Positions 15,394 to 57,839 of a DNA stretch of 64,000 bases are shown one piece after another. Origin of the DNA: Azolla caroliniana. Taxonomy: Eukaryota; Plantae; Polypodiophyta. A program made the position numbers and the translations under genes. Position 1 is the stretch's first letter. Each line of letters begins with the position of its first letter. The notes under the pieces were generated by a model. The model had not been told where the DNA came from, searched no databases, and was given only the letters and a program-made list of their open reading frames with translations. The stretch is taken from positions 13,206,001 to 13,270,000 of the forward strand of contig JBHGNT010000021.1 in the NCBI GenBank assembly GCA_043228905.1, in the 5' to 3' direction.

Positions 15394-15409
15394 AAGGCAG
15401 CAAGGGAGG

Positions 15410-23000: not shown

Positions 23001-23484
23001 TAGGCAACCTCGTGTATTCAACCCTGGACAGAAGGTATTTTTACGTGTACCTCACAATTCTAAGACATTGTCTACGGGTAAGTGCTCTAAGTTAGCCCCA
23101 CGGTTTTGTGGACGTTTTATAGTCCTCAAACGCATTGGGTCATCAGCCTATCGTCTCGCTCTTCCCGATGGTGTCGGAATTCATCCAGTCTTTCATGTGA
23201 GTCGTCTAAAAGAACTTCTAGGTTCTGGCGACAATACAGTTACGACTGAAACTCTGGTTACTTCTGAAGAATTATCTTCTAAACCACATGTACCAGAAAG
23301 AATTCTCGATGTTAAAACAAAAAAATTACGTACTACAGAAATCCGAGAATTCAAAATAAAATGGATGGATAAATCAATAAAAGATGCCACATGGGAACGC
23401 GAAAATACTCTTAGAACTAACTTCCCTAACTTTCCATTGCAAGAGTGCAATGTTTTAAAGAGGGGGAGTATGATACGGGCATGA
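20012..23484 (+). pseudogene. pol: Chromovirus pol: PR-RT-RNase H-IN-chromodomain, disrupted
   Basis: Motifs [52 protein letters not shown] and chromodomain PERILD...IKW...DATWE. Frameshift/deletion near 21870 and a stop at 22213. Confidence 0.95.
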
Positions 23485-30536: not shown

Positions 30537-32462
30537 GGTGTGTCAGGCCGGAAGGGCACACCTGGATCAGAACAGGAGTCTCGCAAATGGCCATCGTGGG
30601 CCGGATCGAAGCGTGACTACAGGACGGTGTTCGGCGCGGGCGGGGCCGAACGAAGGAAGCGAAAGACGGCACAAGAGAGGTGTCGGGGACGAGGTGACAA
30701 GAGCCTAGTGGACTGCACAGGGCCGGAGTCAGGGGATGGCAAGAGAGGCCGGAGGAGTATCCTGCACACTCGCTTCGTAGATCTCGGTAGCTCCGTCGAA
30801 GTAGCGAAGACTGACACGGCAAGCCCAGGGTGACAAGCTGGTGGGGGCGAGGGGACGACGGCAAGCGGAAGACTCAGGACCTATCGCGGCAACACAAAGA
30901 CGGGAAGGGCCAAGCAGGCTACTACAGGGTGTTCCTCGGATGCAAAGGACACCGGTATGCGGGTGAGCGGCGATGCACGATCTGGCCAAAAAGGGGGCCA
31001 ACAAGGCGTGCAATGAACCGAAGTGCGACACAGGCAGTGCCAAACAACGGACGAGGGTATGTGGCACACAGAGGTGCCGGAGCGGAAAGGCGAGCGCGGA
31101 GATAGGTTGCGCGGTTCGGAGGTAGCGCGGAGAAGGCCGGAAAGGGATCCTCCACACTATTCCGGAGACCATGGCGGTTCGAGCCGACGCGGCGATGTAA
31201 GACCATGGAGAAGGAAGGTGGCGGTGAAAGGACGAAGGCAATGCGAAACAACATGGGACGACCATCAGGACATCACGATTGGACAACGGAGGCCAAGCGG
31301 GCCACTACGGGCATGCCTCAAATAGAGGACAACGGGCATACGGCAGGAAGCGGGGCGTTCATACGGCCGAACAAGGGCCAACGGAAGTACGCGTACTACG
31401 GAGATCGCGGCAGAGGACCCATCGACGGGTCGAACGAGCCTACAGGGAGGTAAGCGCGAAGGAAGAATCGAAGCCGACGGATCAAACCGGCAGCGAGCCG
31501 GGATGCGGATCACGGAAGACCGGTTTCTCACCGGCCGAAATCTCTAACCCTTTAATCGGACTTGGCACATACCGGTGGATGTGCAGTTAGGTGGGGGCGG
31601 ATGTCGTGAAGAATTTCGGCCAGAGGCGGAAACCGGGAAACATTGGCTACATCGGCGGGGTGCAACGTGTGTACGCACCCATGTACATTTAGTGTGAATA
31701 TCGAGGGCGCCTTTATGGTGCCGAAGAGTAGTCAAGTCGGGACAGACGATCCCATGTAAGTCGGGATTTGTCCCACATTGTAACGCATCCCTTTCCTTGT
31801 TCTATAAAAGGAAGGGAACGCCCTTTGTGAAAGGGTTGCACCCATTTTGCATTAGAGGGTATACCGTTAGGTTTAGAGTTAGTTTCTTCTTCTTCTTCTT
31901 CTCCTTCGTGTTCGCTTAGGGTTTGCTTCAGCTCATCTCCTGCACAAGACCCCGCTCAACGCGACGAGCCTGTGAGCTCCCCGACGACGGCTTGGCAGCT
32001 GACGACTACTGTAACCTACCTTGGAACGGCTCGAAGCCGGGAATGTATTCCTTTTATATACATATATACGTTTGCGTCTGTCTGTGTATATTCGCGTCTT
32101 CGTTGGTGTCGGGTGCTTCCCCTTTCCTGCACTTCCTGTACTTAAGGGTGTGAGTCGGGTTGGCCTGTGTGTGTGTGTGTGTGTGTGAGTGAGTGTGCGT
32201 GAGTCGGTGTTAAGCGCGCGCTCTCCCTCTCTCTCTCTCCCTCTCTCTCCCTTCGGTTGCTTCCGGTGTGCTTCTGGGATGCCCCGGAAATGGTGAAGCA
32301 CAACTTCCTACGCTCCATCACTCCCTAGTCCAAGACTCCCGTGGTCCCGCCTTTCTCCACACACGCGCGTAACAACGCGACAGTGTTACTTTAACGCTCC
32401 TAATATAATACTCTATTTTCCATGCGTTATGTCTGGTGGTTACAATTCCGACGGACAACACC

Positions 32463-32503
32463 TGGCACGCCTATGGGACACTACCATGGCACGTCGAACC
32501 CAT
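32463..32503 (-). other. tRNA-Arg 3'-end mimic replacing the PPT (element Y)
   Basis: Minus strand reads ATGGGTTCGA-cgtgccatggtagtg-TCCCATAGGCGTGCCA, then 2 nt, then the LTR TGTTGTCC. Confidence 0.75.
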
Positions 32504-35500: not shown

Positions 35501-36579
35501 ATGGAACATATATCCTGCTCCTTGTTGATCCTCCTCCCCAATGTTACTTTGCATGCCCACTTTAAGTTGCATGGCCTCTATTTTTAGTTGTGTGGCCTCT
35601 ACTTTTAGTTGCATGCTTCCATTTTTAGATGCATTCCTTTTACGTTTAGTTGCATGGCCTTGGCTTTTGGTTGCATGCGATTGTCCGTATAATTCGGCCA
35701 AATGACACAATCATCCATAAAGTGTAGCCCGTGTGCAATCCGTATGTGTGTCGCCACCAAACCGTAGACGCGTCCGCGCGCAAATGTCCCGCCTAAACCC
35801 TTTTACTTTTAGTTGCATGGCCTTGGCTTTTGGTTGCATGCGATTTTCCGTATAATTCGGCCAAATGACACAATCATCCATAAAGTTTAGCCCGTGCGCA
35901 ATCCGTACGTGCGTCGCAACCAAACCGTAGACGCGTCCGCGCACAAAAGTCCCGACCGCGCAATGTACGCATCCACGCGCACGCGCGTCCAACCCGCACC
36001 GCGTACGCGCACGCCCAAAAACGTCCACGCGGCCATACACACGCGCATACACCTGAAGTGTGTACGCATCGACGCGCTCGTCCACACACGCGCGTACGTC
36101 TGAAAACTTCCACGCGGCCATACACACGCGCATACGCCCGAAACGTTAACACGGCCATGCATACGCGCGTATGCCACATAGTGTAGCCCAAGTCACCTTG
36201 AACATTCTGTGCTCCACACATTGATAGAATGAAGATGTTTTGGATTCCCTTATATATCGTGGGTTCCAATGTTGTCCTATCTATGTGGGATATCTCACAG
36301 TTTTGTCTTTTCTTACTTCTTCTTCAAACTTTACACTCACATAACTTGATACCTGTTTATCCGTTTCATGCGTAGTAAAATATATTATGAAGCTCTTGAA
36401 GACACCTATCTCTATGAATACATTAAGCTAATCTTAAATAATAGTTTTACTAAGTTTCATATCATGTGAAAAATCAGACGACATTCACCCCACCAAACCT
36501 GCACATCCACCGGTATGTGCCAATTGTGGTGAGGTTCCTCTTTTAATTACTCTTTTTCAACCTCGATGTTCGAGGCTCT

Positions 36580-39500
36580 ATCATCTAGAGCTTCAATCTC
36601 AAGATTTGGGGCCTCTCTTCTCTTAAAGATCTTGATTCTTTTCCCTGCAATTGGCAAAGCAAGTCGAGTTCCATCTAACTCCACTAAAAAATAGGTTGCA
36701 TTGCTTCCTATTTTCTTGACCATATACGACCCAAACCATCATTTTGCGAACTTTCGAGTAGTGCTATATTGATTATCGAGACTACTGTCATAGACAAGAA
36801 CCCAATCTCCTTCTTCAATTTTTCTTTGCCAAAGGCGATGCTTTCTATCAAAAATGTCCTTGTTCTTCAGTCGAGCTTGGCGCAACCGTTCTATTGCCAA
36901 CTCGACATCTTCGGGCCTCCGTTCTAGTTGTTAAATCCTCGTGGCTAGCAAGTCTTCCCGACTCATTTCCTCTTGCCATGACAAAGATGTCCATGAAGCA
37001 ACACTTTACTCGATAGACATTATTGGTTTTTGCCCTAATATGAGTTCGGCCGGCATATATCCTGTAGTCATGCTATGTGTAGTTCTATCAGCCCACAATG
37101 CATAAGGTAGTAATCGTGGCCAATTCCCCATCTTGCCGTCGCAAGCCTTTGCTAGAGCTTTTACAATCGGACTATGTCCTCGTTCCACCTTCCCATTTGC
37201 GTCTGGGTTGTATGCCACGATGAGCGATAGTTTGACGCCTATTCTTGAAAAGAATTCTTTAGTTTCATTCACATCTAATTCTCCCCTATCAGCTACTATT
37301 TTGCCAGCACATCCGTATCGACAAATAACATCTTCAAGGAGAAACTTAAAAACTACCGAAGTTGTTTTATACCTTAGCGCCTGTCCTTCTACTTGGTTGG
37401 TGAGATCCTCTCTTGCTAGCACGAGATACTTCATTTAACCCAATCCCATCGACATAACCACTATGTCTACCAACCACTTATAGTGCATTGATAATGGATA
37501 TGTCGGGTGAAGTTCATCCCTATGTTGAATATTCGAGTATAATTGGCATTGCTCACATGTTTCAACATAGCTTGCTACATCTTTGTAAACACCCGACCAC
37601 CAATACTTTTCCTTGAGCTTTGCAAATGTTGCCCATCTACCACGATCACCTGCCCACACACTATCATGAAATTTAGCAATTAGTGTTTGTTGATCCTGTT
37701 TCTTGCACACCACTCGAAGTGGAGTTCCATTCTTTTTCTTCGTAAACTTCCAAAGATGTCCTTCTTTGAGGAAGAACTTGTAGGCCTTCTTCCTAATTCG
37801 GTAGAAGTCTTCCTTTGACCATGATTCATCTTTTGTAAGAGAGCTTAAGTATTTGCCAATTTCAATGAATTCACCCTCATAATCTTCTACTTTGAACACT
37901 GCTAGCACCCGAGCACAAGAAACCGTAAAGAAGTTTAGGCCAACATACTCTTCGTCAAAGTGCAAATCTTCTTCACCCTCATACCTCACCCTTGACAACA
38001 TATCGGCCACCACATTATGCTTTACATTTATATGCCGAATCTCAGGGTTGAGGGCCTTGATATAGGCAATCCATCGCAGCATAGCAATATCCAGTGTAGC
38101 ACAACCGGATATCATTCCGAGAATAGGTAGACAATCGGTTTCGATTATGACCTCTGTTCCTATAAGGTAGTCACGGTCGATTTTAACCGTGGATACTATT
38201 CCCCATAGCTCTCTCTTTACTTCGGCATACTTCCTTTGTCTTTCGGTTAACACCTTCGCACCGAATCGGATTGCATACCGATTCTTTTCTTTGTCTTCTT
38301 GGTTTATCACCCATCCAATTCCGGTTGGGCTCGTATCCACTGTCACATATATCGGGGTACCATCGGTGTAGTCGGCTTTGTGCAGTGCTGGAGCTTCCAA
38401 TAATAGTTTCTTTAGCTTTTGAATCGCGTAGGTATGCTCATCTTCCCATTCGAACTTCTTCTTTTTCTTTAATAGTCCATACAATGGTTCAACGACATGA
38501 GCATAATGTGGAATCCATATGCGATAGAATGCACATGCTCCCAAGAATCTACGCACCTCCATTTGAGACACACATTCTTCTTTCATCTCTTGAATAGCGT
38601 TCACCTTGGATGGAGATGGCTTCCGGCCATAAGACCCACAAAAGTGTCCTACTACCAATATTTCTGGTTGACCAAATGCAAACTTCTCTCCCGAAAGCGT
38701 GAGATTCGCATCCTCAAGCTTTTGCAACACCTTCTCACTATCCTTTATATGATCAATGACAAATCTTCGGCAACCATCTTCATCTTTCGATTCATCTTTT
38801 TCTTCCACCAAGCATCCTTTGATTGGAATATCATCTAAGAAGGGCATTGTGATATCGGGGATGCAATCCCTCAACACTTTATTCATGGCATTCACCATGT
38901 GGGCTACGGAATTTGTTGCACCTTGGGGTAAGGTGCACATCCTTACCAACTCGATCGGCGTCCTCATTGTCGTTATGTCTCTACTATCGACGGCCAATTG
39001 AAATTGATCATAGCCCGAGTAGAGATCACCAATGGAATAGATTGATCTTCTCGGGAAGGCTTCGGCAAATTCATCCACACTTGGACCAATTCCGGCATTT
39101 CGGATCGTCACCTTGTTGACGGATTGGACATCTTGAATAAAGCATAAGGACCCGTTCTTCTTCGGCACCGTAAACCATCTATTGGAGTAGGGAGCATTGG
39201 ACGGCTCAAGAATTCCCATCCTAACCTTTTCCTTTAGAAGCTCAATCAACTTCGGAATGTGAGCTCTTGGAACCGGTATCGGCTTGAGGTTCCCAGGTAC
39301 ATGCGGCACCGTAAAAATCACCATCAGCTCTATTATCTTCGGGTCGGCACATCCGATCTCTTGTGGAGAGAAGGCAAAGCCTTTCCCATGTCTCTCAAGC
39401 ATTCCACGGAACATTCTCTCCTCTTCAGGGAGAAGGAAATCTTCCCTTCCAACTTGTAGCTTTCCTTTTGTCTCTTTGGTGAAGACATGACCTATTGCCT

Positions 39501-39900
39501 TTAGATCCCTTAAGCTCGAATCATTAGCAACTTCCTTCATCTTCTGCCAGCTATCTTCCGGTAGCGGAACCGCAACTGGCTTGATCTTCTTATTCATTGT
39601 TTTATATTTTGTGTTGACTTCAGCTTCATCCATCAAGATGCCTCGATGATATTCATCGATGATAGCGTACATGTCGATAAAGTTAACCGAAATCACATGT
39701 TTATTGTGAGGATAGCTCAAGTCCACGACTTCCTCGATTTCGCCGATGGTGTCGTTAAATGAGGCTTCCTCCAGAATATGAGACACAAATTCTTCTTCTT
39801 CGATTATGCTTTCTTCTTTCAGCACCTTCTCGAAGTCTTGTATCCGATGCTTGTCCTTCTTGTTGAGTAGTGTTAGTTTACATGTGCCACTAGGTGTCAC
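36580..39900 (-). pseudogene. pol: pol (RT-RNase H-IN) of the Ylt1-like Gypsy
   Basis: 821-aa plus 142-aa in-frame ORFs with GDLYSGYDQ, LPQGATNS, PFLDD, VDTSPTGIG, CEQCQ, ADRGE and NGKVER; a GPY/F-like tail runs to about 36600. Confidence 0.93.
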
Positions 39901-39949
39901 ACATATTGCTTCTCCTTGCGATCCACTTATTTTGCTTCCTTGTGGGGAC

Positions 39950-42215
39950 TTATGATTGCTTGGACTATTTCTACCCCACTCTTCAATAGTCAGCTCTAAA
40001 AAGCCGAGGATTCGCCTCCAAGGCTATCTCGGTTCCTTTCGTGATTAGCCCGCACCGTAAGGAGTTGAACAAATCTTTGATTGTCAAGGCTCTTGACTCG
40101 CGCGAAGGCCGCTCCATTATCGAACACCTTAGTCTCCATCTAGGACTATGTGATATATGGTTGTCCTAGGATGACGGAATGTGAAGCCAAGTCTTGCACG
40201 AAGAAGTGTTGATCCATCTCCACATCTCCGATTGTGACTTTAACATTGGGGCAAGCTGCGTACAAGTCTTCTGTGGCCTTCGTTGCCGCTCGTATCTTCC
40301 ATCCGTAGTTTGTGTTGATCATACATCTTCCTTTCTTGTAGAATTTGGTCGACATGAGGTTGATCTCCAAACCATGGTCAATCAAGGCTACCACGGTCTC
40401 CTTCTTCTCTCTGATCTTCACCAGCGTCTCCATTGTCGCTCTTGCCCAATAAGGCCGAGAGTAATGGCTGTCCACCATCACTTCTTCTTCCTCCTCCTCT
40501 TCTGATCTTGCCATGGTTATGACACTTGTTTTCACCTCTTCTTCATCCGATTGTTGCCGCGTCCGCTTAATCAAGTCCACGATAGTATCGTGGAACTCCT
40601 TCTTAGCGATCCCAAGTAGCTCTCTCAAAGTAAGGTCGACATGACTGTCTAAAACCTTCTCCTCAAGGACCTTCCGCAAGTCGGTTGTTTGTTCTATGTT
40701 CGACCTTAGCTTGTAAGTCGGAGCCGCTCGTTCTTTTCCTTTCTTCACAGATTCATCAACTTCCATCCGAGAAGGTTGGCTCGATCCACCGGGCTTCATG
40801 CTTGTTTCTCCTATCTCTTTTCGTGGTGTAGGCTGGGCTTGTCCTTCTTTCCCTGCATTCCTTGTATTGTGACGCTTTGAGGTGCCATCTTCTTCACCGG
40901 TTCTTTTCCTCTTCTTTTCGACAAGAGCCTCATAGTTGTCGCACACAACCTCCACAAAGCTTATGTTATCATCGACTGGATCCGACAATCCGGTTACTCA
41001 TCGCACATTCCGATCAGCATGTTTGAGATCCTCTAAACCTATTTTTCCTTTCTTTTCATAATCGAATATTGTTGGCCAAAACCCAACTCCCGGCTTGATC
41101 GTCTTTAGATTCTCTCTTCCGACTCGTATTCCCGCCGATGCAGCATAGTGCATGGCTTCCACATGCCTTGCATCTTCCTCTTCCACGATCTTCTTCAGCT
41201 TGCCTCTCCCGAAGTTCACTCGTTGTGGCTTTCATGTCTCGCTCGAGTGGATCATGTTGCCGTCCAAATAGACGACATTCTTGCGAATTGCGTCTTGCAA
41301 GTCAGTGCACTCCCTTCGCGAGTGCTCGAAGCTATCGCACCACACACATCTATACACTTCTTTCCCCTTTGGCCCATGTCGACCTAAGTTGGCCAGAGAT
41401 ACCGCTTCAAACTTCTTGAAGATCTCTTCGATTATAGATTCCTCGATTGTTTTCTTGTCGAAATTGTTGATCGGCTTGTTAGACTCGATCGTCACAGGTG
41501 TCTTCCTCCTCCACGATTGTGGATTCTCCATATCAGTTTCCTCTTGCCATTGTCGACACTTGTCAAGACGGCTACAAGCCTTCTTCACCATCACCCAGTC
41601 CGCTACCAAGCCATTCGGTTGTGTTTCGTCCTCCAAAAAGTTGCCCAATTCTCGCCGATCTTTCACATCCACTGTCTTCAGGAATATTCAGACTTTATCT
41701 CCATTGAGAATTCGTTGATCAACACTCGGAAGTCGGTTATACTTCTGGTCAAATTCGGCATATACTCCAGACACACACATATTCTTCCCTTTCTTCTCGA
41801 TCCAAGACATTAGCGTATGTCGAGTCATCCATGATGCGTCTTCAAGCATGTATTCAGCGAGAAGCGCCTTTTCGAACTCGGCCCAAGTTGCATGCTCGTT
41901 TTGGATCTCCATGACGCGGTCACGGATCCCTGGTTCCACCACACGTTTGAAGCTAGAAATTTGTTTGAGATCATTGACATCGCTTTGTTGCTTCTCGTTC
42001 CAATAGGTAGCAAGAAAATCCGTGATGTTCTTGCCACCAAATCTTCCAGCTATCTCGACCGTACGATCAACAACTTTGTCGATTAAAGCTTCTCGATGTC
42101 TCACCTTCAGCATGTATTCCACTACGGATACCATGCCTTGCGTTAATTCCTCTCCTTGAGTTCCGCTTGTGGAAGCCATCATTGCACTTGATATCCTCCC
42201 TACCGCCTCTTTCAC
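39950..42215 (-). pseudogene. gag: gag-protease of the Ylt1-like Gypsy, fragmented
   Basis: ORFs 41688-42215, 41232-41672 (CVWCDSFEHSRREC) and 40146-40988 (LTLRELLG, ALIDHGLEINL, VILGQP). Confidence 0.88.
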
Positions 42216-45200
42216 GTCGGGTTCACTACTTAATTATGTCGTGAAAAGCCGTCACTATGTGGTGATCGTGAGACGGAACCGTCGGGGTTCTGGACTAGAA
42301 GGATTTAGTGCAACACGTACAACACAAGCAAGTTTTAAGCATAACACAACTGGGAGAGACAAATCATTAGTTTATTGCAAAAGAAAATCTATTCTTTATA
42401 ATTTCATAATCGTGTTACAATGGGTTGGAAATGAGAAATTAATTTTTCAAAGAAAGGAGCCAACAACCATGCAAGGAGTGGTCCGATATGAATACGAGAG
42501 ATAATTTTGGACAAGAAAGATCGAGTAAACAAAGCTAGGAGTTTGATATCAATATGTGAGATAATTTGTTTCTCGAATCCGAGAGGGAAGAAGAAGGAAG
42601 GGAAAAAAAAAACCTAGAGGGAAAAAATGGGACATATATCCTGCTCCTTGTTGATCCTCCTCCCCAATGTTACTTTGCATGCCCACTTTAAGTTGCATGG
42701 CCTCTATTTTTAGTTGCTTGGCCTCTACTTCTAGTTGCATGCTTCCATTTTTAGATGCATTCCTTTTACTTTTAGCTGCATGGCCTTGGCTTTTGGTTGC
42801 ATGCGATTGTCCGTATAATTCGGCCACATGACACAATCATCCATAAAGTGTAGCCTGTGCGCCATCCGTACGTGCGTCACAACCAAACCGTAGACACGTC
42901 CGCGCGCAAAAGTCCTGACCACGCAATGTACACATCCAACCCGCACTGTGTATGCATCCGCACACACGTGCGTCCCGACGGCGCCGTGTACGCATCCGCG
43001 CGCACGCCCGAAAACGTCCACACAGCCATACACACGCGCATATGCCCGAAGTGTGTACGCATACGCGTGCTCGTCCGCACACACGCGTATGTCTGAAAAC
43101 GTCCACGCGGCCATGCACACGCGCATACGCCCGAAGCGTTAACACGGCCATGCATACCACACAGTGTAGCCCAAGTCACCTTGAACATTCTTTGCTCCAC
43201 ACATTGATAGAATGAATATGTTTTGGTTTCCCTTATATATCCTGGGTTCCAATGTTGTCCTATCTTTGTGGGATATCTCACAGTTTTTTCTTTTCTTTCT
43301 TCTTCTTCAAACTTTACACTCAGTGCATAACTTGAGACCTATTTATCCGTTTCATGCGTAGTAAAATAAGCTATGAAGTTCTTGAAGACACTTATCTATA
43401 TGAATAATTAAGCTAATCTTAAATAATTTTTTTACTAAGTTTCATATCGTGTGAAGAACCACACGACATCGTTGTGCGCACTGAAGGTGCTCCTCGGTCG
43501 GTCGCGCCATGAAATGACTAATCACCCCGACCGGGTAGCTGAGATCTGGTCGGGTGATGATCAAGTATATAAGGCTTCCGACTATCTGTCAGAACCTCGT
43601 CGGGTCGCATACCTTTCCAGAATCAGGGCAAAGTTTGACGGTTCTATCCAGAGGAGTTGAGATAGACTTATAGTCGGCCATCCCGAATTTGAAGAGCATA
43701 CTCAGCACGTAATGCCGTTGGCTGATCAGTATGCCTTCGGGGGTGCGGATCACTTCGATCCCGAGGAAGTAATGAAGGTCCCCCAGATGCTTCATGTCGA
43801 ATGATGCCGCAAGCTGGAGCTTCATGCGGTCAATCTCACCTAGGTCGGCGCCAGTGATGACCACGTCATCAACATAAAGTAAAATGCTAACCGGCCCGAG
43901 TTGACCTTTCCGGATGAACAGTGAGGAGTCTGATTTTGACGTCGCAAAGCCCAACCGACGCAATCTTTGTGTGATCTTCGCGTTCCAAGTAGGCGGGGCT
44001 TGCTTTAGTCCGTAAAGGGACTTCTTCAATCGGCATGCTGCCGAAGTGTTCGTTCCGGAGTGAAATCTGGGGGGTTGTACCATGTACACCCATTCCTCAA
44101 GCTTACCTTGCAAGAACGCATTCTTTACATCCATCTGATGTAAGTGCCACCCCTTTGCCGCAACCACCGCGAGCAAAACACGGACGATCGTCATCTTCAC
44201 GACTGGCGCAAACGTCTCATCGTAGTCAATGTCGTGTTTCTCCACGTAGCCCTTTCGCTACTAACCAGGCCTTGTATCGGTTGACCAAGTCATCAGTGTT
44301 GTACTTGACCTTGTACACCCTTATGCACCCGATCGGCTTCACACCCACATGTACTTGACCTTGTACACCCACATGCACCCGATCAGCCAATGCACACATC
44401 TCTTCCTCCATTGCGGCACGCCAATTCGCGTCCTTCGCCGCTTCTGCGTAGCTTTCCGGCTCACGCACATCCGCTACACAGGTCATGTACGCATAGTGAT
44501 GCGCCATGTACTCATTGTATCCGAACCGCACAACAGGGTTCTTCTGGCGGGAAGACCGACGTAACTTGGTATTACCCGGTTTGGGGCCCTTCTTGGCCAG
44601 GTCGGACCTCGTTCCCGGAGTTCGGCCTTCATCCTTTGTGGAGTCGGATTCGCTCCGATCCGACTCAACGTTGCCGGTTTGGTATTCCGGCATCTTCTTC
44701 TTCCCCCTTCTCTTTGCGCGTGAACCATCTCCTTGGTTCCTTGCGTGGGGAAAGCATGTCAGAGTCTCCACTACTCGCTAGTTCCTCATCCGACTGGTCA
44801 TCCCGACTCAGCCGCTCATTCGGTCCACTTAACTGAAATGAGATCAGACTCTCTTCTAGAGTGCCGAGGTCTTCATCTTCTATCTGGGCCGATTCAGGCT
44901 CACTAGCCTCATCCTACGGTATCGGGTCAGGGTCAGAAGTCGGAGTCGGTAAGGCATACCATGATGTCGTCTCATCAAACTCAACATCTCGGCTAACTCG
45001 GACCTGGTTCGTCCAGGGGTTATAACACTTATCCCCCTTTTGCTCATGCTAGTAACCGACCAAGATGTATTTCTCTGACTTTGAATCCAACTTCCTCCAC
45101 TTCTCATCCAGCACATGCACATGTGCAATGCTACCGAATATCCGAAGGTGTCTCAAATTTGGCTTGCGCCCGAAGTATAGCTCATGCACAGACACCTTGT

Positions 45201-45732
45201 CACTGATCCGGTTTTGGATGTAGACGGCCGTTCGAACCGCCTCCGCCCAGTAGAAATGGGGCATGCTCTTCTTGTTACCCGTTCCTTTGGGTGAACACCT
45301 TCGATAGATCTGCGGCTATCGGTATTCAAGGGCGTGGTACGTGAAGGCTCGTAATAGAGGCGTCGTGAGAGAAACAATGCTCAGAGATAAAACACTAGCG
45401 AGATCTTGATAGGCGTGGGCGGCGCTGAAATCATAGGTATGAATCAAAGCACAGACACATGGAGCAAACTGGGCACAAATCAGATATATTACTGCGACAG
45501 AAAAAGGATTACAGAACACGGCCTACGGCCGGTGACCTTACAAGATTATCTAGTTACGAGGGACTCAGCTAGTGCTTCCGCCTATATTTTTCTTCTCCCC
45601 TGCTCTGAAGTACTGGTCCTCGTTTAAATAACGTTTCCCCTAATACACAGCCGAGTCGTCGGTGGCCCGTGATACTCGGACTCGGCGTTTGCTAATTTCC
45701 TAATTTTACATTTCTATCCTCTGGACAACACT

Positions 45733-45771
45733 TGGCACGCCCGTGGGACAGGACCTGTCCGTCGGACCCAC
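45733..45771 (-). other. tRNA-Arg 3'-end mimic replacing the PPT (element Z)
   Basis: Minus strand reads GTGGGTCCGA-cggacaggtcctg-TCCCACGGGCGTGCCA, then AG, then the LTR TGTTGTCC. Confidence 0.85.
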
Positions 45772-45828
45772 GACTTACAAAAATACTAACAATATTACAA
45801 AAATTTCCTTTTAGGCGTGATCCTCGTT

Positions 45829-48800
45829 TCATTCCTCTTTTAAGATGTCGAGGATGTTTTCGGGGTCCGGGGTGCTGGCAGGGTGGTCTGGTTGGACTGT
45901 CGATGCCGGGGGTTGAGTTTGGTCCGGGGGTGTCATATCTTCTCGGGCGTCCACCTCAGGTGCGGCCGATTCTTCTGGTGGGGATGTGGGTTCGAGGGCC
46001 CTGACCTCTACTTCGATTGGATCTGGTACCGTGTGGGCATCCATGGGATATTTGTTGGCCGGGGCAAGTTCCTCCTGTGCCGTGTCCGTGATCCCCTCGC
46101 TGGAAGGTTCTTCCTTCTACTCTGTGGCCGTTGGAGGGCTGGTGGGGATGGCTGCGAGTCATTCTCGTTCGAAGGCTTCTGCTTCCAGGCGAAACAACAT
46201 CTGACCGTCATTGATGTCCTCTAGTATTTGCTCGATTGCCGCAGTGTGAGATTTTGCCAAGGACTGGTAATCCTCGGTTAAATCTGCACGCAGGTTTTGT
46301 ATGCTGGCTTCGTCCATTTTGTAAAAGCCGCAGCCCTCCTTCCGTCGGTTCTCGGCGTCGGCGCGTAAAATATGCAATTCGGCAGCTTGGGCTACCCATT
46401 CGTCTCCTGCGCGACTTAATGTTTCCTCGACCTTTTTGGTAAGGTGTTGGCGCTGTTTCTTGATCAGTATTCTGATGCATGTCTCATCCATGCCGTGCTG
46501 TGCTCGGATGGCTGCTAATTCCTGTTTTAAGCCGTCGACCTCGGCCTGAAGCTTCTTTGCTAGTAGTTCATAGGTGGCTTGAGTGTTCTTTGCATCCGCG
46601 GTTACGAGCTGGATAGACTGCTCGTAATGCTTGGTGAGTTCTTCGGTAGCTTTCTCCCATTCTTTTTGACACGCGGCCCAGACTTGTTCCCGTTCGATGA
46701 TTCTCTCTTCTTGTAGGGCGAAGTAGGAATAAGATAATTCGTCTTTTTGCTCCGAAAGTAGCTTGCATTTGATAAAAAACTCGTCAGCCATTTCTTTAAG
46801 GGTCGTACGCTGACTCTACAACTCAGCATTCTCCGCGATCATTCTCTCCTCCCGTTGGCGATTTCTTTCCTCCTGTCGGTGGTTCAAGTCTTTCGCATTG
46901 TCGAGCGCGGCCTGTAGGTCTAGGACCTCCTTCTCTTTCTTTGCCACTGTGGCTGCGTATTCCTCCAGCTTGCTTTTGAGTTCGGCTTCTTTGCCCGCGG
47001 CTTGAGCTTGTACCCGGCCCAATGCTTTGTTCTGCTCGTGTATCCTTTGGTCGGCCTGGGCTCTAATCTCGGCCATCTGCTTGGAAGCTTCTTCTTTTAG
47101 GCGAGCCATCGCCTCATGATGCCATTGTTCGTGTCTCTCGGTTCGTCATTGTTCTTCTTTAAGCTCCGCTCGGTAATCCCGGAGCGGGGGTTCTGTCTGG
47201 GTTTCCACCTCCTTGGGTGGACGAGGGGGTGGTATCTCGGTCTTCTCCATGGGTGTGGCTGCCTCGGTTGTTGTGCAGGCATCGACCATTTGTAATGAGT
47301 CCGTTTGTGTGCTGCCCTGAATCGTCAGGATTGAATCTGTGACAGTGCTTTCATCCATCATTGTTATGCGTGGAGGGGCTGGGAGGGCCTCGGTGGTCGT
47401 GACCGGAAGCGGCCGATTTTGCTCCCAGGCTGCCAGCTTCTGTTTTGCAGCGTGCCATAATTCCGTAGCCATCTTAGCCTGTTTTTGGGATATTTTTATC
47501 TTTCGGGCCATGTCTTTGGCTGCTCGCGTAGTGCGATCCAGGTCCCTATATGCCTCGATAAGGGCCGTGTTCAACTCGGGGACCTCCATGAGGAGAGTGG
47601 CCTGTTTTGCCTGCTTCTTTCTCCCTATTTTTTGTAAAGCCCTATCGTCCTGGGGCTCAATTTCACCCAATAGTGCGCGTTCAATCATTTTTGTTTCGGC
47701 GTGCTCTTCCGCCATTCGAGCGGCTGCCGTGACTTGGGCTCTAGCGAGGAAGTAGACCAACTCGAATGTCGTACCGAGGCGTAGGAGCGCACTAAATTCA
47801 TAAGCCTACACGGGGAGGTCTTTATACCCGAGGACTTCATCCTCCGAGATGTGCGTTGTCTACCCATGCTCGATCTTTCCCTGGTTCAACGATGCCTCCT
47901 CAGGGATGATGGCCAGGTTGCTCTGTCTGACAACTAAGGCTTGCTCTTGTTGTGGCTCTTTCTGTTCTGTCGAGGACTCGCAGTTGAGTCGTCTTCTCTT
48001 GCTCAGCTGTGTTTGGGGTTCCGGGGCCGGTAGTGTCGTTTCCTCCGCCTACTTCCTTTTCTGGGGTCGTGGTGGTGCTGCTTGCTATGTGTTGGGGCAT
48101 GCGCTAGGCCTTGGGGAAGTTACCGAGGGGCGCAATGTTGGCTGTGGAATGGTGACATCATCTGCCGTGTTGTCCTCCGCGGCTATCTCCTCCTCCCATT
48201 CTTGGCAGGTCTCGGAAACTTCCCTTTTTTGTTGGGGTTGGGTGGGTGGTGGTGCAGATGCGGGGTTTTGGTTGGCGGTAGGAGGTGAAGGAGATGTGGG
48301 TTCCTCCCATGCTTCGTGGTTGATGGCAACGAATTTCTCTCTCTGCGTTCGTGGTGGTGGTGGGGACGTGAGTGTGCGAGGGGAAGGAAGAGAAGAGGGT
48401 GGGTATAGAACCATCAAAAAGTGGGTAAGAATAGACAACATCTTCTTACCGAACTGGAATGAAGTTAAGGCGGCGCGGAGTCCTTCGCCTGTGATGATTC
48501 CCCAATCGATTTTGTTTCCTTCATACGCGCTGATGATGATGGCTGCCTTGTTCTACGGCATGCTCGTCGGGTTCATATGCACGAACGCTTACTCCATCAA
48601 TATACGAGCAATCTCCCCGAAAGCTCTGTTGGGACCGCCATACGTGCGATATGCCTTGCCTGAGGCTGAGTACTCACCGAAGTACTCTTTCATCTTCAAT
48701 GCCGGGGGTATGTCGACCTCATGGTCCCCTCCCCGTTGCAGGTCCAAAACAGCCCGAAGCACGTTGTTGGTGATGGCTTCGGGACAAATACGTTTAGCCA

Positions 48801-48906
48801 CACCTTGGGCATCTGGGTGCGGGGGGGCATCGATGATCTTCAGGTAACCGCCCATTCCTCGTTCCTGGAGCTAGGCGCGGGTTTCTGTTGAAGCGGTAGG
48901 AGGCAT
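45829..48906 (-). pseudogene. Large (about 1000 codon) sense-strand accessory ORF downstream of pol, function unknown
   Basis: Consecutive fragments 48589-48855, 48085-48441, 47900-48100, 47146-47760, 46816-47109, 46159-46791 and 45829-46044; homologue at 34-759. Confidence 0.8.
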
Positions 48907-49428
48907 GGTGGAGATGGAGACGGGGTTTGACTGTGTGGAAGAGTGAAGAAGAGTGATGAGACGAGGGCGAGACAGAGCAGGAACAATAGGAAGGGGAAGT
49001 TCAGCAGAGGGGCTATGAGAGCGAAAGCAGGCTTGAGAGCAAGAGCGTTTAGAGCGATGAGAGCGAGACGGGGTTTCTGAGCTTGAGAGCGATGGAGATT
49101 GGAAGCGATAATGAACTTCTGTGTCTGTGCTGCGTTTTGGAAACGGTTTTAGTAACTTACTCCTAGGGTTTTGTGCCTAAAGCGAATCCTGAAGATTCTG
49201 AGTCGTGGGTGCCATAATAAGTGACTAGCACCACGTGTCCTGAAGGTGAGTGGGGTGCTTCTAGTGCTTTGCATGTGCTTAAATAGGTAGTAAATGAGTG
49301 GTGGCGAGGGATGCTCCTAAATTTGTGGGTGCCTAGGTGGGTGGTGTAAGTGTAGCTAATCGGTGGCTAAACTATGGTTAATCCTACCTACTACTACTTT
49401 CATTAATTTCAAGAAGGTGGGTGAGTCC

Positions 49429-51902
49429 TTATTCAGGGGGACACGTGGCCTCCTCCATGGTGGTTTCCCGAAACGGGTTGGGTGGTGTAGTGCCTCGATA
49501 TGGTCGAAGTCGGAAACCATTGGCCCAGCTTTTGACAGTGTCGCCGGTGAGTGTGCCGAGCTGGAACGTCCCGTTGAACTCGTCGATAATCCAGAATGGA
49601 CCGGTCCACCGAAATCTTAATTTTCCCGGCATAGACCTGAGTTGTGTTTGAAAAAGAAGAACCGGTTTGCCAATGGTGAGCTCCTTTTCCAGCCCGTGTC
49701 GATGTCGATCCACGAAAGCCTTGCGTTGTCGTTGGCGTTGTTCGAGCTGGACCATACTCTCTATCCTATCTTCGCCGAGTTCGAGGAGTTGTTCCAACCG
49801 GTATTGCTCGGATTGGGCCTCGGGGAGCCGAGCTTTGATTTGAACTCGGAGGCTCGGGACTTGGAAATCTACGGGCATTACGGCTTCTAACCCGAACGCC
49901 ATTCGAAAGGGGGTTGATTGGATGCTTGTTTTGAAAGTCGTACGATACGCCCACAACGCACTCTGGAGTTTGTCATCCCAATCGGTCCTGTTTTCATTGA
50001 CGATCTTCTTCAGTATGGTTTGGAGGATTTTACTGGTTGATTCCGCCAAGCCGTTCGCCTGCGAGTAGTATGGTGTGCTTTTCTTGTGCACCACCGCGTA
50101 GTGGTGTGTAAGCTCACGTATTATATGATTGATGAAGTGCCCACCTTGGTCACTAACGAGCTCGATTAGGAATCTGTAACGGCACCAGAGGTGCTCATAC
50201 ACGAATTTAGCCATGGATGTCGTCGTGTTGTCTTGGAGTGCCTTAGCCTCGACCCATTTGGTGCAGTAATCCGTGGCAACGATAATATACCTATTCCCTG
50301 TACGGGCCGCGGGTGGTTTGAAAGGGCCTACAAAATCCAAACCCCATTTTTGAAATGTGTCCAACGGAAGAATCGGCTGGTGTGGCATGCGTGACTGTTC
50401 CATTGGTTGCCCCAGTCATTGGCACAAATCGCATTGCCGGCAAAACTCGTGAGCGTCTCTCTTCGTTGTCAGCCACCACAATCCACTTTGCCAAACTTTC
50501 CTTGCCGTGGAATCCCCGGGGTAGTGCCCCCCAGCTACTCCCTGGTGGGCCTCCTGAAGAACGACGCTCTTCTCGAATTGCCGAATCGCTCGGCGCCATA
50601 TGCCGTCCGAGCCTTTGTGGTAGAGAATGTCCGAGAGAAGGCAAAAATTCTGGCTACGCACTGCTAGGCGTTTTCTCGTGTCAAGGGGCATGTGCTCGAG
50701 AGGTAAACCGGTAGTGAGAAAATGGGTCATCTCCATGATCCATTCATCTTCGTTATCGTCTGGTATCGTGGTCAGGTTAAATAGGCTGGCGTCTAGTAGC
50801 TCGTTGTACGTTGTTTTTGCCGGTTCCCCTGACTCAAGATAGCTCAAGTAGTTGGCGACGGCATGTTGTACCCCGGGTCGATGCTGAATCTGGAAATCAA
50901 ACTCTTGGAGTAGGAGCATCCACCGAGCCAACCGTCCGGTGAGGGCTTGTTTATTGACCAAATAAAGAAGGGCCGAGTGATCCACGTGAAAGGTAAATTT
51001 TCGGCCTAAGAAGTAATGCCGGAATTTATTGATGCTATAAATCATACCGAGGGCCTCCTGCTCGGTGATGGAGTAATTCTTTTCCGCGGTCGAGAGCCGT
51101 CAGCTGGCGTAGTACATGGGCCTATACCAATTCGGGGGTGTGCATTGCATCAGGGCACTTCCGATGGCGATGTCTGAAGCATCTACGAAGACATGAAATG
51201 GTTCGGACCAAACCGGAGACTGGACCATAGGGGCATGTGATAGCATTAGTTTTAGGGTCTGATAGGCCGTGTCCTCGATTGACGTCCATTGGAAGGGAAG
51301 GCGATGGACTGCCGCGTGTAAAGGTGTCGCGAAATCGGCCAGGTGTCGTATCATTCGGCTGTGCCACCGGATCTGTCCCAAAAAATGGCTTACTGTCTTA
51401 GCGTTCGAGGGTGTGGTGGCGGTCAGGATTGCCTTTACTTTATCCGGGTCCATAGCAATGCCTTCTTGACTGACAATGTGGCCGAGAAGGTTGCCGTTGG
51501 TGACTAAGAACGCGCATTTCGCCGGGTTTAAGCTCAATCGAGCTTGGCGACAACGGTCTAGGCAGAGTCGTAACTGGGTCATGTGTTCCCGTCGATGGCC
51601 ATACACGGCGAAATCGTCGAGAAAGACTTGCATGAACGTCGGGATGTAGTCATGAAAGATTTCGGTGATGATGCGCTGGAACGTAGCCGGCGCCGTTTTT
51701 AGACCGAACATCATTACTTCTGCTGCAAAAACACCCCATTCCGTGACGAAAGCAGTTTTCTCCTGATCCTCCAGGTGCATTCTTATCTGGTTATAACCGT
51801 TGAACTCGTCGAGGAAACTGTAGCATTCGTGGCCGGCTACCGTGTCGAGGACGTTGTCCGTGAATGGGAGAGGGAAACCGTCAGTGACTGTTGCCGCGTT
51901 AA
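49429..51902 (-). pseudogene. pol: Element Z RT-RNase H-integrase
   Basis: GYNQI, MFGLKTAPATFQ, FLDD, VDASD, HHCC, WGLDFVGP, SDQG, NGLAE, WTGPF; no chromodomain. Confidence 0.95.
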
Positions 51903-51907
51903 GCTTC

Positions 51908-54900
51908 TGTTGAGCGGCAAGCTCAACCGGAGCCGGATCGGCTGAATAAGCCGGAGCCGGTAAGCGAGACGGATCGGGCGAAACGGATCGGTATGATGGT
52001 GAGCAACCGAACCGGCAAGCAGTGGAGGCCGGGTCCAATCCGTAACCGGAAGTCCAATCGGAAGCCTAGTATAGGATAGAATACTAGGTAGCTATAGTCT
52101 CGTAGTAAGTGTCAGATGCTCGTGTGAGCATTGAAGTACATGGTACTTCTGTTAGTCCCAAGAGGACTTGTATAAATAGTGTTACTTAGGACAGTGTGTA
52201 TACAGAGTCTTGAAATAATTTTGAAATAGTGTTCTGCTCTCTCTGTCTCTCCCTCTCTCTCTCTCTCTCTGTGTTGTTCTCTGTTTTACGCTTCCGCAAA
52301 CACTCACGTTTACATGGTATCAGAGCGCGAGGGTTGAGAACCTCCACTGCAGACATTTACTCTTGAGAAGAAAACCCTAACAGGTCGAAAACAGACACAA
52401 TAGAAGACATGGATAGAGGCATGGCTACGTCGCTCCCGGTGGAGAAGCTCGACAGGAGCAACTACGCATCCTGGTCTTACAAGATGCACCAGTACCTGCT
52501 TGGACACGGGTACTGGAGCTATGTCGAAGGAGCGAATGATGCGGCGCCCGACTCGGCACACAAGGACTTCCTGGTATGGGAACAGGCGGCAAGCAGGGTG
52601 ATGTACTGCTTCGCGTCCAGTGTCGGCGATCAGCTGCTTAGCCACATCTGTGACGCCAAGACACCGAAGGATGCTTGGGGGAACCTGAAAAAGGTTTTCG
52701 CCGCAAGCGCCACTGCCCGAAAGCTGCAACTCAGACAGGAGTTGAGCAATGTTCGACAGAAGAACATGTCCGTGGCATACTACACAGGCCGGATAAAGGA
52801 GATCTGCGACTCGCTCGCCTCTATCAATGTTACTGTAGAGGAAGACAAAATGGTGTAGGTATGCCTCGGAGGCCTGGCGTCCAAGTTCGGAGGATTCCGG
52901 ATTGCGGTGTGTACAAGGGAGAATAGCCCCTCATTCTTCGACTTACAGTCGATGCTCCTTGTAGAGGAGAACCACGCCGGTGCATCTACCAGTGCATCCC
53001 CGGACAACCGAATGTTGTACACGGGAACGGATCGGCTCCGTGGGCGTGGTGGAATAGGTGGGTCGGCACGCAATGGAGGCGGCCGGCAAGAGCAGGAACG
53101 GAGGCACTATGAGCGTGCCGATAGCAGTTCCGGGACTTCCACAAGCAGGGGGAGTCAAGGCGGAGCCGAAGGCCGGCAAGACAAATCCGCTACGGAATGC
53201 TGGTACTGTGGCAAAAAAGGCCACAAGGGAGAGCGAGTGCTGGAGAAAGCGTGCCGATTCGGACAAATCCGGATACGGCAAGACCGGTAATGATGGTCGG
53301 CAAAACTTGCACTACGCAAACGGATCAGGAGGATCCGGAACCGGAAAGGCCGGTAAGGGGCCATCCTTGGTGATGAATCACAAGGCAAACTCAATGAAGA
53401 AGACCACTTCCAAAACGGAGGAAGTGTGGTATGTTGATTCGGGCGCATTGAACCACATGACAAGCCACAAAGAGTGGTTCTCCTTTCTGGAGAAACCAGA
53501 TCAACCAGGAGTAGTCGAAACCGGAGACGACACTCCTCACCCAACCATGCACGTCGGAGAAGTCCCTCTAAGCCACGTCGAACAGAAAGGGAAGCTAATG
53601 AACGTATTACACGTTCTGACAATCACGAAGAACCTGGTGTCCGTCGGTCAGATTGTCGACCAGGGGATGCAGGTGCGGTTTACGCACCTCGGGTGCTTCA
53701 TTGAGGATGAGGGCAAAGTCATTGCGCAAGGGCGCAGAGACGGGAGGATGTTTATCCTCAACACCAATGACTTTGGCATCGCTCTGTTCACGAAACGACA
53801 GAAGGTCGAGTCGGACATCGACCTGTGGCACAAGCGGATAGGCCACGTCAACTACCGGAGGCTTCAAGACCTACAAACGAAACAAGTCGTTTTCGGTTTG
53901 CTGAAGTTCAGCGGCCGGAGAGCCGAAATTTGTGAAGCCTGCCAACTTGGGAAGCCACACCGGCTTCCATTCCCCACCGAATGGAACCGGAGCCGTAACA
54001 AGCTCGATCTCATCCATTCGGATGTGTGGAGACCGGCACAAAGGGTAAGCCTTGGCAGGAGCCGATACTTCGTCTCCTTTGTCGACGACTATACTCGACA
54101 TACTTGGATCTACCTCATTGAGCGGAAGAGCGAAGTCTTCGATTGTTTCTGGAGCCTCCAGAAGATGGTGGAACGGGAATCAGAGAGGAGGATCAAATGC
54201 CTTCGGTCGGATGGCGGAAAGGAATATTTTTCCGGCCAATTCACTAGTTATCTACAACAGAAGGAAATTCGGCGAGAGTTCAGCTACAGATACACACCGG
54301 AGCAAAACGGTGTGGCCGAAAGGAAGAACTGGACACTTGTTGAAGCGGCAAGGGCAATGCTGGAGGAGAAGAGCATGCCCCGGTTCTACTGGGCGGAGGT
54401 GATCCGGACGGCCGCATTACTGACAAGGTGTCAGGTCATGAGCTGTATTTCGGGCGCAAGCCGAACTTAGGACACCTTCGGATATTCGGCAACATAGCGT
54501 ATGTGCATGTGCCGGATCAAAAGCGGAGAAAGCTGGATGCAAAATCGGAAAAATGCATTCTAGTCGGCTATGCTCAAGAGCAAAAGGGTTAGAAGTGCTT
54601 TAACCCCCGGACGAAGGAAGTCCAAGTTAGCCGGGATGTCAAGTTCGATGAATCGGCATCCTGGTACTCCGTACCGACTCCGACTTCTGATCCTGACCCA
54701 ATGCCGGAAGATCAGGCTAGTGAGCCTGAATTAGCCCTGGCAGAGGATGACGAAGCTGGGACTCAAGATGAGAGTCCGGAATCGTTACGATTGAGTGGAC
54801 CGAACGAGCGACTAAGTCGGTTGGACCAGTCGGATGAAGAGACGGCAAGTGGTGGAGACTCTGCCGTGCTCTCCCCGCGCAAGGAACCGAGGAAACGGTT

Positions 54901-57834
54901 CACACGCAAAGAGAAGGGGAAGAGGAAGATGCCGGAATTCGAAACCGGCAACGATGAGTCGGATCGGTGCGTATCCGACTCCGGAAAGGAGAAAGGCGGA
55001 TCTTCGGCAACGAAGACCGACCTGGCCAAGAAGGGCCTCAAATCAGGTGACGGTGCGTTGCGCCGATCAACCCGCTAGAAGGATCCCGTCATACGGTACG
55101 GGTACAATGAATACATGGCGCATCATTATGCGTACATGACTAAGGTGACAGAAGTGCGTGAGCCAGAGAGCTACACAGAAGCGGCAGAGGACGCAAATTG
55201 GCGTGCCGCTATGGACAAAGAAATGCGGGCACTCGATGCCAATGAAACTTGGGACCTAGTTGATCCTCCCCGTCACTGTAAACCGATTGGATGCAAGTGG
55301 GTGTACAAGGTCAAGTACAACGCCGACGGTTTTGTTAACCGGTACAAAGCCCGGTTAGTGGCGAAGGGATACGCGATCGACTACGACGAGACCTTTGCTC
55401 CTATGGCGAAGATGACGACGGTTCATGTGGTACTGGCGGTTGCTGCGGCAAGGGGGTGGCATCTTCACCAGATGGATGTGAAGAACGCCTTCCTTCAAGG
55501 AGAGCTTGAAGAAGAAGTCTTTATGACTCAGCCCCCCGGATTTCACTCGGAGATGAACAAGTCGGCGGTATGCCGACTGAAGAAGTCGCTTTACGGCTTG
55601 GAGCAAGCCCCCCGAGCTTGGAACGCGAAGATCACGCACCGGTTGCATAAGCTGGGGTTTGCTGTCTCTAAGTCGAACTCTTCGTTGTTCATCCGGCAAG
55701 GCTCTGACGGTCCGGTATGTATACTCTTGTATGTGGATGATTTAGTCATCACCGGACCGGGTCTTCCCGAAATCAACCGCGTCAAGTTCTAGTTGTCGGA
55801 CGCATTCGAAATGAAGGACCTAGGGGACCTTCATTATTTTCTTGGGATCGAAGTGATCCGGACCCCCGACGGCATATTGCTCTCACAACGACATTACGTG
55901 TTGAATATGCTGTATAAGTTCGGCATGACGGATTGCCGACCTGTCTCCACACCCCTGGACCGGAACCAGAAGCTCCGTCCCAACTCCGGACTTGCCTGCA
56001 ATGAGAAACGGTTCCGACAGGTTGTCGGAAGCTTGATATACTTAACCATCACCCGACCCGACATCAGCTATCCGGTCGGCGTGGTAAGTCAGTTCATGCA
56101 GAAGCCGACCGTGGAGCACCTTCAGTGCACGCAACGAATATTACGGTATGTCAGTGGCACTCAGGACCGGGGACTGCTATACCGGCGAGGTATACCCGCA
56201 GAACTTGTCGGTTACGCAGATGCTGACTGGGCTGGCGATGCGTCTGATCGCCGCTCTACTTCCGGATACATGTTCTCCATAGGTAGCGCGGCCGTTGCGT
56301 GGAGTAGCAAGAAGCAGCCCATGGTGGCTTTGTCAAGCACTGAGGCTGAGTACCGGGCCGCTACCGTTGCCACTTGTGAAGCCATCTGGCTTCGGCGACT
56401 ACTGCGAGACTTGCGGATCGAGGTATCGACCCCGATCCCGATTTACTGCGATAACATTAGCAGCTTGCAGCTCGCCAGGAACCCTGTGTTCCATGCTCGC
56501 ACAAAGCACATCGAGGTCCACTACCACTTCGTACGTGAGCGGGTCCTGAGCGGTGAAGTTGACCTACGGTATGTTCAAACGGATCGGCAAGTTGCCGACA
56601 TCTTTACCAAGCCGCTCGGATCGGACAAGTTGCAGCACTTTACCGACATGCTTGGTATTCAGCATCTCGACGTGCCGCACTTGAGGGGGAGAAGCAAGGG
56701 CAAAGTCTCTACCGAAATGGGCAAAGGCCAAAAAACTGTTGAACCCGTCAGTAAGAGGAGAGCCGGAAGAAGAGGAGACAAGAAGATGAAGGAAGCCGAG
56801 TCGACGAAGGAAGTCGACACATCCGAACAGGTCGGAGCAAGCGGCTGTGAAGAAGAGTTGTGCACTCAGGAAGAGAAGTGCATGTTGTGCGGAGGTCATC
56901 ACGACGGTATTGACCATGATGCGGAGTCAAATGAAGAATTTGATTTCAGTTCAGCGGCTGAAGAAGCCGAGGGAAGCATGGAGAAGGCCAAGACTCGGAA
57001 GTGGTCCGACGTGGTGAGAGGCCTGAAGCCGGAAGTCGAATCGGAGTGTACCGATTCGGACAAGAGCTGGAACGAGTCGGAGACAGCCGACTCGGGTCAA
57101 CAGATGGATCCGGATGAGTCGGATCGACTGAAGGCCAAGGGGACACGGACACAGCGGAAGTCGATGCCATCGTGGGAGAACCGACGGATCGGCAAGCGCC
57201 GGAGTCACAGCAACGTGAGTGCTGAGATGGGCCTATTGAGCAGACATGCCGACCGAGAGGGTCGAGGCGCGTAGAACCAAAGAGGTCGCGGCAAACGGGA
57301 CCGGACCGGACGAGGAGCGCGAGCAAGGCGGAGTGACACCAGGAGAATTCGGTTGGAAGAACTGACTGCCATAGAGGTCGACACTATGACCCCACCTCAG
57401 GTTGAGCTTGAGGGGGAGTGTTGAGCGGCAAGCTCAACCGGAGCCGGATCGGCTGAATAAGCCGAAGCCGGTAAGCGAGACGGATCGGGCGAAACGGATC
57501 GGTATGACGGTGAGCAACCGAACCGGCAAGCAGTGGAGGTCGGGTGCAATCCGTAACCGGAAGTCCAATCGGAAGCCTAGTATAGGATAAACTACTAGGT
57601 AGCTATAGTCTCGTAGTAAGTGTCAGATGCTCGTGTGAGCATTGAAGTACATGGTACTTCTGGCAGTCCCAAGAGGACTTGTATAAATAGTGCTACTTAG
57701 CACAGTGTGTATACAGAGCCTTCAAATAATTTTGAAATAGTGTTCTGCTCTCTCTCTCTCCCCCCCCCCCCCCTCTCTCTCTCTCTCTGTGTGTTGTTCT
57801 CTATTTTACGCTTCCCCAAACACTCACGTTTACA
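51908..57834 (+). mobile_element. Full-length Ty1/Copia element C; LTRs 51908-52314 and 57419-57834
   Basis: TSD GCTTC; PBS-Met 52315-52327; PPT TTGAGGGGGAG at 57408-57418; inserted in the RT of Z. Confidence 0.97.
52409..57274 (+). pseudogene. Copia C gag-pol polyprotein with C-terminal extension
   Basis: ORFs 52409-52858, 52907-53290, 53058-54470, 54701-55078, 55115-55792 and 55793-57274 carry gag/PR/IN/RT/RH motifs in order. Confidence 0.95.
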
Positions 57835-57839
57835 GCTTC

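Follow-up and report, generated by a model that had tools for sequence, protein, structure and literature searches.

Fern Ty3/gypsy retrotransposons related to an element of Azolla caroliniana carry, at the site of the polypurine tract (PPT), a tRNA-sense mimic of the 3' half of tRNA-Arg(UCU), and the comparison of these sequences points to an undescribed way of priming plus-strand DNA in this lineage. To our knowledge, retroviruses and LTR retrotransposons are without exception taken to prime their plus strand from an RNase H-resistant PPT. A large and very abundant fern lineage lacking a PPT would amount to a second solution to plus-strand priming, by means of its own RNA or a host tRNA, and would offer a natural system for primer choice by reverse transcriptase (RT) and RNase H. 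It would also give a reason why such fern elements may be overlooked or wrongly delimited by annotation software that relies on a PPT; the motif is a sharp marker of their 3' LTR border. The reading that we favour, with somewhat less than even confidence, is that a cis element descended from the tRNA-Arg(UCU) 3' half would replace the PPT and set the plus-strand start, with the element's own RNA as the primer.

A tRNA-like motif in fixed register with the 3' LTR

The window analysed, a stretch of 64 kb, holds the motif at three sites, designated W, Y and Z. As a first-pass annotation of the sequence had proposed, the motif is present at all three with its CCA end exactly 2 nt before the LTR-initial TG, and reads RTGGG, TYCGA, an insert of 12-14 nt, (G/T)T, CCCAY, RGGCGTG, CCA, 2 nt and TGTTG. 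The mimics lie at 768-807 on the plus strand (W), at 32463-32503 on the minus strand (Y, an ATGGG/CCCAT variant) and at 45733-45771 on the minus strand (Z), and score 76.5, 64.5 and 72.4 bits, respectively, against a covariance model of the motif built from six sequences; a search of the window with this model returned these three sites only. The 2-nt spacer is TG in W, GG in Y and AG in Z (45731-45732, minus strand), where genomic copies are A/G polymorphic. Exactly four copies of the 9-mer GGCGTGCCA were counted in the window, against about 0.5 expected by chance: one in each motif and one, on the opposite strand, in the primer binding site (PBS) of Z. Taken over all sources, 12 junctions that represent at least five families and at least three sources share the 2-nt distance between CCA and LTR. 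Chance likeness of the motif was rejected.

W is truncated by the start of the window; it shares 88% identity with the end of L245, an intact metagenomic copy, and from this homology the approximate end of its LTR (810-1176, plus strand) was drawn. The LTR of Y is split: its first 78 nt lie at 32383-32460 on the minus strand, and it continues at 14595-14229 beyond a plus-strand element (14596-32382) inserted 78 nt into the LTR. The repeat pair 14596-15372 and 31602-32382 belongs to this nested element and not to Y. Beyond the resumed LTR follows a Z-like gag (13197-11989, minus strand; 39% identical to the gag of Z). Y is thus a complex or tandem arrangement, and the earlier description of it as a simple element 3' end holds for the mimic and the 2-nt register and fails for what lies beyond them, where the LTR is split and followed by gag. 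No PBS is present after the end of the Y LTR, and the weak homology in this region suggests that a leader of about 600 nt including the PBS may have been deleted between LTR and gag. Directly after the LTR end, 14229-14215 (minus strand) reads C-GGCGTACCA-GG, a 10/11 copy of the last bases before the LTR.

The nested plus-strand element is itself a gypsy element with a full 18-nt tRNA-Trp PBS (15377-15394) and a conserved GCACAT...ATGTGC hairpin just upstream of the C-interrupted G-rich tract before its 3' LTR (31602), and contains a chromovirus (16980-23925) and copia-like DNA. A related gypsy element with a DUF4100 gag (35120-43469, minus strand) has the same tRNA-Trp PBS, with TGG changed to TAG, at 42228-42211, shares the hairpin and has a G/T-rich tract, GGTGGGGTGAA, before its 3' LTR.

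Borders, primer binding site and coding content of element Z

Z is the only full element of the window in which both ends are testable. It spans 45273-61251 on the minus strand, and alignment of the LTR pair places the 3' LTR (TGTTG...TAACA) at 45273-45730 and the 5' LTR at 60794-61251, both 458 nt long, 96.7% identical and with TG..CA ends. A 5-bp target-site duplication (TSD), AGAAG, lies at 45268-45272 (minus strand), with its second copy at 61252-61256. Z interrupts copia-like sequence, of which a paralogous empty site was found near 28122. Among contigs from four public DNA runs that match the Z LTR, the sequences separate precisely at 45730, the behaviour expected at an outer LTR edge. 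Because these borders are firm, the mimic is an internal sequence that adjoins U3 and is absent from the 5' LTR.

The coding region (45829-52038, minus strand) encodes RT-RNase H and integrase, followed by about 3.6 kb of coiled-coil extra ORFs, the last of which stops about 57 nt before the mimic; a gag-like ORF lies at 57915-59264 (minus strand). The Pfam order on this strand, RVT_1, RT_RNaseH, Integrase_H2C2, rve, is that of Ty3/gypsy. No archaeal-type RNase H, the extra domain of the Tat/Ogre lineage, was detected among the Z ORFs with Pfam, which is weak evidence since Z is degraded but gives no ground for placing Z in Tat. The counterpart of the broken coiled-coil ORFs of Z and W is intact in L245, where a homologous ORF of 1048 residues (1649-4795, plus strand) that matches no Pfam family follows the integrase and stops some 5 nt short of the mimic. 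A copia element nested in Z and not part of it (51908-57834, plus strand), with a canonical PPT and a tRNA-iMet PBS, serves as an internal control.

The PBS of Z (60776-60788, minus strand) is complementary to positions 64-76 of tRNA-Arg(UCU) at 12 of 13 bases, the single mismatch being a C>T change at a CpG. It is separated from the LTR end by 5 nt (CAATT, 60789-60793, minus strand), and in Adiantum relatives by 3 nt (CTT), spacers that exceed the 2 nt on the mimic side. The complementarity of this PBS to the motif, noted in the first-pass annotation, is borne out by a predicted duplex of 10-11 bp with an energy of -31 kcal/mol. Such pairing invites the proposal that the main role of the mimic is long-range contact, its partner being either the PBS or those strands of the primer tRNA, 5' acceptor and T stem, that binding at the PBS sets free; the two RNA ends would be drawn together for the first strand transfer, or the PBS masked, and the G-rich tail would act as a weak primer besides. 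There is precedent in the CYC5/CYC3 pairing of Ty1 and the 5'-3' bipartite PBS of Ty3. However, long-range contact leaves the fixed register of CCA, 2 nt and TG unexplained, and as the main role of the motif we consider it improbable. PBS-mimic pairing may instead add to priming by the element's own RNA or by a host tRNA.

Identity of the motif with tRNA-Arg(UCU)

In L019, a related plant contig, the covariance model found a second match, which ARAGORN and Rfam identify as a complete tRNA-Arg with anticodon UCU (1190-1265, plus strand; 71 bits against a threshold of 29). Its last 28 bases comprise the T arm, the acceptor 3' strand CGGGCGT, G73 and CCA, and agree with the tRNA end given in the first-pass annotation, which had read the motif as T arm, acceptor 3' strand and CCA. 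Identity to positions 49-76 of this tRNA is 26/28 in W and in Z, and 24/28 in Y and in L054. The mimics share only two departures from this tRNA, the absence of C66 and an insert at the 58|59 junction, such that the Z mimic consists of tRNA 49-58, a palindromic insert and tRNA 59-76 without C66. The idea of a full-length 3' part of the tRNA must be amended to this extent, the mimic being one base shorter. Only positions 49-76 are represented; Rfam gave no tRNA match to the W motif even at E<=10, the motif not forming the full cloverleaf of RF00005, and ARAGORN found no tRNA in the window. Since in eukaryotes CCA is added to tRNAs after transcription, the motif most likely descends from cDNA of a mature tRNA-Arg. 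The human tRNA-Arg-TCT has the same T arm (PMC13267816), which was the only match when the literature was searched with strings of the tRNA sequence.

The tRNA copy of L019 has CCA after it in the DNA and, in the orientation of the Z-like element beside it, reads T-TGGCAC..., a context shared with the Z PBS. After it come about 330 nt of the end of an extra ORF, a mimic (708-759, minus strand) and an LTR. This copy may be a deleted element into which the whole primer tRNA was copied by read-through past position 58, as opposed to a tRNA gene; the contig stops at this point.

The insert lies at 58|59, the point at which m1A58 stops reverse transcriptase (the role of tRNA position 58 is discussed in PMC1785368), and the block after it, being tRNA 59-76, corresponds to the 18 nt that define a PBS. 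The complement of the motif does read as a second, inverted PBS, as had been suggested. These features are what would be expected if host tRNA-Arg(UCU) primed both strands, at the PBS on the RNA and at the inverted PBS on minus-strand DNA, with no need of a PPT: RNase H would clear the template, and the packaged tRNA would anneal opposite the mimic and be extended into U3. A tRNA would then start both DNA strands of a retroelement. Both inner LTR borders of Z, each on its own strand, read alike (CAACA, 2-5 nt, TGGCAC); the conserved tRNA 49-58 could pair too, and the palindromic insert would loop out at 58|59, where m1A58 blocks pairing. Against these points, the abundant host-type copies all lack C66, and W and Z also carry G for A/G67-type mismatches, which leaves 9-10 contiguous bp. 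A tRNA annealed to DNA is moreover an RNase H substrate, and would have to outcompete a perfectly matched fragment of the genomic RNA and tolerate a bulge. We regard dual priming by the host tRNA as the strongest alternative, a real but rather unlikely possibility, and return below to a primer cut from the element's own RNA.

Absence of a polypurine tract

In all 12 mimic-type junctions the longest purine run in the 20 nt before the LTR is 3-4, as against 12 in the chromovirus and 9 in the copia element of the same window, and the claim that these elements lack a PPT at the PPT position is upheld by this comparison. In Z, no polypurine tract abuts the 3' LTR, while LTRs, TSD, PBS and pol order are all those of an ordinary element. 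L242, a relative with 45% integrase identity and a tRNA-Asp-like PBS, has a purine run of 10, and in the two elements of the window that have a tRNA-Trp PBS, a G-rich tract broken by T or C precedes the 3' LTR.

A PPT hidden upstream or inside U3 was rejected. An upstream primer would place the mimic in the 5' LTR, and the 5' LTR of Z starts with TGTTG directly after the TSD. The same observation bears on the view that the motif is a functionless relic, a captured tRNA cDNA that hitch-hikes while the true primer lies elsewhere or the LTR borders are misplaced. Purine-rich codons do occur 10-100 nt upstream, and in the contig L009 the run AAGGGGG lies 14 nt upstream of the tail. But no other part of the element is as conserved or as widely shared as the mimic, which is kept across fern lineages in which the integrases are only 55% identical. 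The probability of a relic or a misplaced border is very small, and we take this explanation to be close to excluded. An antisense nested PBS remnant was also rejected.

Distribution among relatives

The closest homologues of the Z integrase were found in ENA and JGI assemblies, followed by Adiantum nelumboides (42-58%) and Marchantia (37%). When relatives were fetched by protein alone, the junction was present wherever a 3' junction could be read; it was unreadable in L240, L241, L243, L246, L248 (Marchantia) and L249, which were left out of the count. L245 (73% identity) has the mimic junction, and L247 (56%, from another sample) has a small loop and the tail CGTGCGTGCCA. GTGCCA, two bases and TGT are common to these two and to both Adiantum families. 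The integrase tree groups the PPT-bearing L242 with Marchantia in a separately supported clade; its backbone is unresolved, and the mimic carriers are not claimed as one clade. A scan of metagenome and viral contigs with 16-mers gave 237 matches, of which only L009, L019 and L054 are real, the remainder (nearly all) being chance matches in bacterial or phage DNA.

In the three copies of Adiantum family 1, the younger one, the T loop is kept through GAGTC, the inserted hairpin is unrelated, and the acceptor part contains two small indels. Their PBS, TGGCGATCC..., matches their own 3' motif at TGGC only, yet GTGCCA-NN-TGTTG is kept. This weakens strict coupling between PBS and mimic, whether as the main role of the motif or in the form suggested by the first-pass annotation, in which the RNA circularises and self-primes. 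The indels fall in the 3' block with which a host tRNA would pair, and so also count against dual tRNA priming. On the other side, an old Adiantum element (one copy) has a perfect 11-nt match, CGGGCGTGCCA, which includes C66, together with a decayed Arg PBS, and counts in favour of dual tRNA priming. From the absence of C66 and from the indels and differing PBS of family 1 it follows that exact complementarity to tRNA or PBS is not required, and, judged on these comparisons, the evidence leans to a cis structure on the plus strand, which the first-pass annotation had listed as one of its three models.

Two further relatives were noted. L009 (1015-1079, plus strand) contains a W-like copy without the hairpin (tRNA 49-65) that keeps AGGGCGTGCCA-AG-TGTTG; it may be a minimal form or a dead copy. 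L241 (24-18118) is a head-to-tail array of a related element with a period of about 8.3 kb and a PBS-like site, TGGCGGATCC, in which a separate LTR pair was not detectable.

Constraint and hairpin structure

Four DNA runs were compared with 45560-46060 at 80% likeness. Word depth, which reflects contig depths and not copy numbers, peaks 5-30 fold over 45713-45763 in the four runs. Within 45733-45778 and the adjoining spacer, variation reaches 10% at two places only, spacer base 45732 and the insert loop, where one base is added, while the flanking LTR and ORF end are full of variants, and loose ends reveal other families with the same GTGGGTTCGACG start. The mimic is the stretch of the element that the largest number of families have in common.

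In the six sequences of the model, an outer stem of 7 bp (the T stem and two pairs into the acceptor part) and an inner stem of 4 bp can be drawn. Stem cells are paired in 89% of cases, against about 50% when the partners are slid, and three pairs show compensatory change, in sequences from 4-5 families. We note that the stem change of Y could be two CpG decays. Each family has a palindrome of its own in the insert, unrelated in sequence to the others (P = 0.005-0.04 in four of five families). G.U pairs occupy 6 cells on the plus strand and 1 on the other strand. Neither these nor the compensatory changes would be needed if the host tRNA were the plus-strand primer. Minimum free energy (MFE) folds of individual sequences do not agree with one another, and their z-scores are weak in all but W, so that the structure rests on the comparative count; with few independent families, this is moderate evidence for a hairpin that would form on the RNA.

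A possible mechanism of plus-strand priming

The left edge of U3 in any LTR element is dictated by the point at which the plus-strand primer ends, to within the 2 nt that integrase removes. It follows from this established replication scheme that the CCA of the mimic must be the end of the primer or of its binding site, a conclusion that we consider quite probable. The further proposal of a primer made from the element's own RNA is more tentative, and each of its enzymatic steps is a suggestion drawn from anatomy, tRNA identity, PPT absence, conservation and hairpin covariation. Once the minus strand is made, the hairpin that resembles a T arm, together with its inner stem, would refold out of the RNA:DNA hybrid, and a tail of 8-10 nt ending in GUGCCA would alone remain annealed. 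RNase H would trim the U3 RNA behind this tail, and RT would extend a primer that resembles the tRNA end already used at the PBS. The short annealed tail could be shielded from RNase H, as in the making of the Tf1 minus-strand primer.

Several points count against this proposal. RTs extend non-PPT RNA primers on DNA poorly. The sequence of tRNA 49-58 is conserved, including the unpaired TTCGA, where a pure hairpin would call for pairing only. The need for an inner stem is questioned by L247, which has a small loop and no such stem, and the need for a hairpin by the L009 copy, which keeps the 11-nt tail without one, albeit as a single copy.

Comparison with known systems

No prior description of a tRNA-sense motif that replaces the PPT was found in the full-text literature or in the plant LTR survey PMC6317226; subscription journals and Repbase notes lay outside this search. 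Several plant non-chromovirus Ty3/gypsy elements of the Athila/Tat/Ogre group use tRNA-Arg PBSs (PMC6317226). The mimic lineage resembles them in its TG..CA LTRs, 5-bp TSD, tRNA PBS, order of RT, RNase H and integrase, and long extra ORF region after pol. It differs in that it lacks a PPT and has a copy of a tRNA 3' half abutting U3.

Self-priming elements of the Tf1 type have no tRNA PBS, their PBS being complementary to the transcript start (R). As proposed here for the mimic, a cis-encoded RNA structure that is cut by the element's own RNase H takes the place of the usual primer. This likeness is one of logic only, since Z has a tRNA-Arg PBS; in Tf1 the tRNA is replaced at the minus-strand PBS, whereas here the site would be that of the plus strand and the structure imitates a tRNA. 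The self-priming of Tf1/sushi is mentioned in PMC6317226.

The bipartite PBS of Ty3, the CYC5/CYC3 sequences of Ty1 and the PAS/T-arm contact of HIV-1 are RNA 3'-end or U5 sequences matched to the T arm of the primer tRNA; in the Ty3 type, complementarity of the 3' sequence may be to the T or the D arm. These sequences are complementary to the tRNA, in contrast to the mimic, which is tRNA-sense, ends in CCA and lies in primer register. The mimic could still pair with the strands freed when the tRNA binds the PBS, a possibility on which duplex energies alone bear.

Hepadnaviruses prime the plus strand with a capped RNA oligomer that originates at the pregenome 5' end and is translocated. There too the plus-strand primer is not a PPT, although hepadnaviruses have no LTRs and their primer shows no likeness to a tRNA. 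In the 3' tRNA-like structures of plant RNA viruses and in the Mauriceville retroplasmid of Neurospora, a CCA end is a start signal for the polymerase or RT. Unlike these full mimics of acceptor and T arm, which stand at the 3' terminus of the RNA, the motif of the fern elements is half a tRNA with an inserted hairpin, and is internal.
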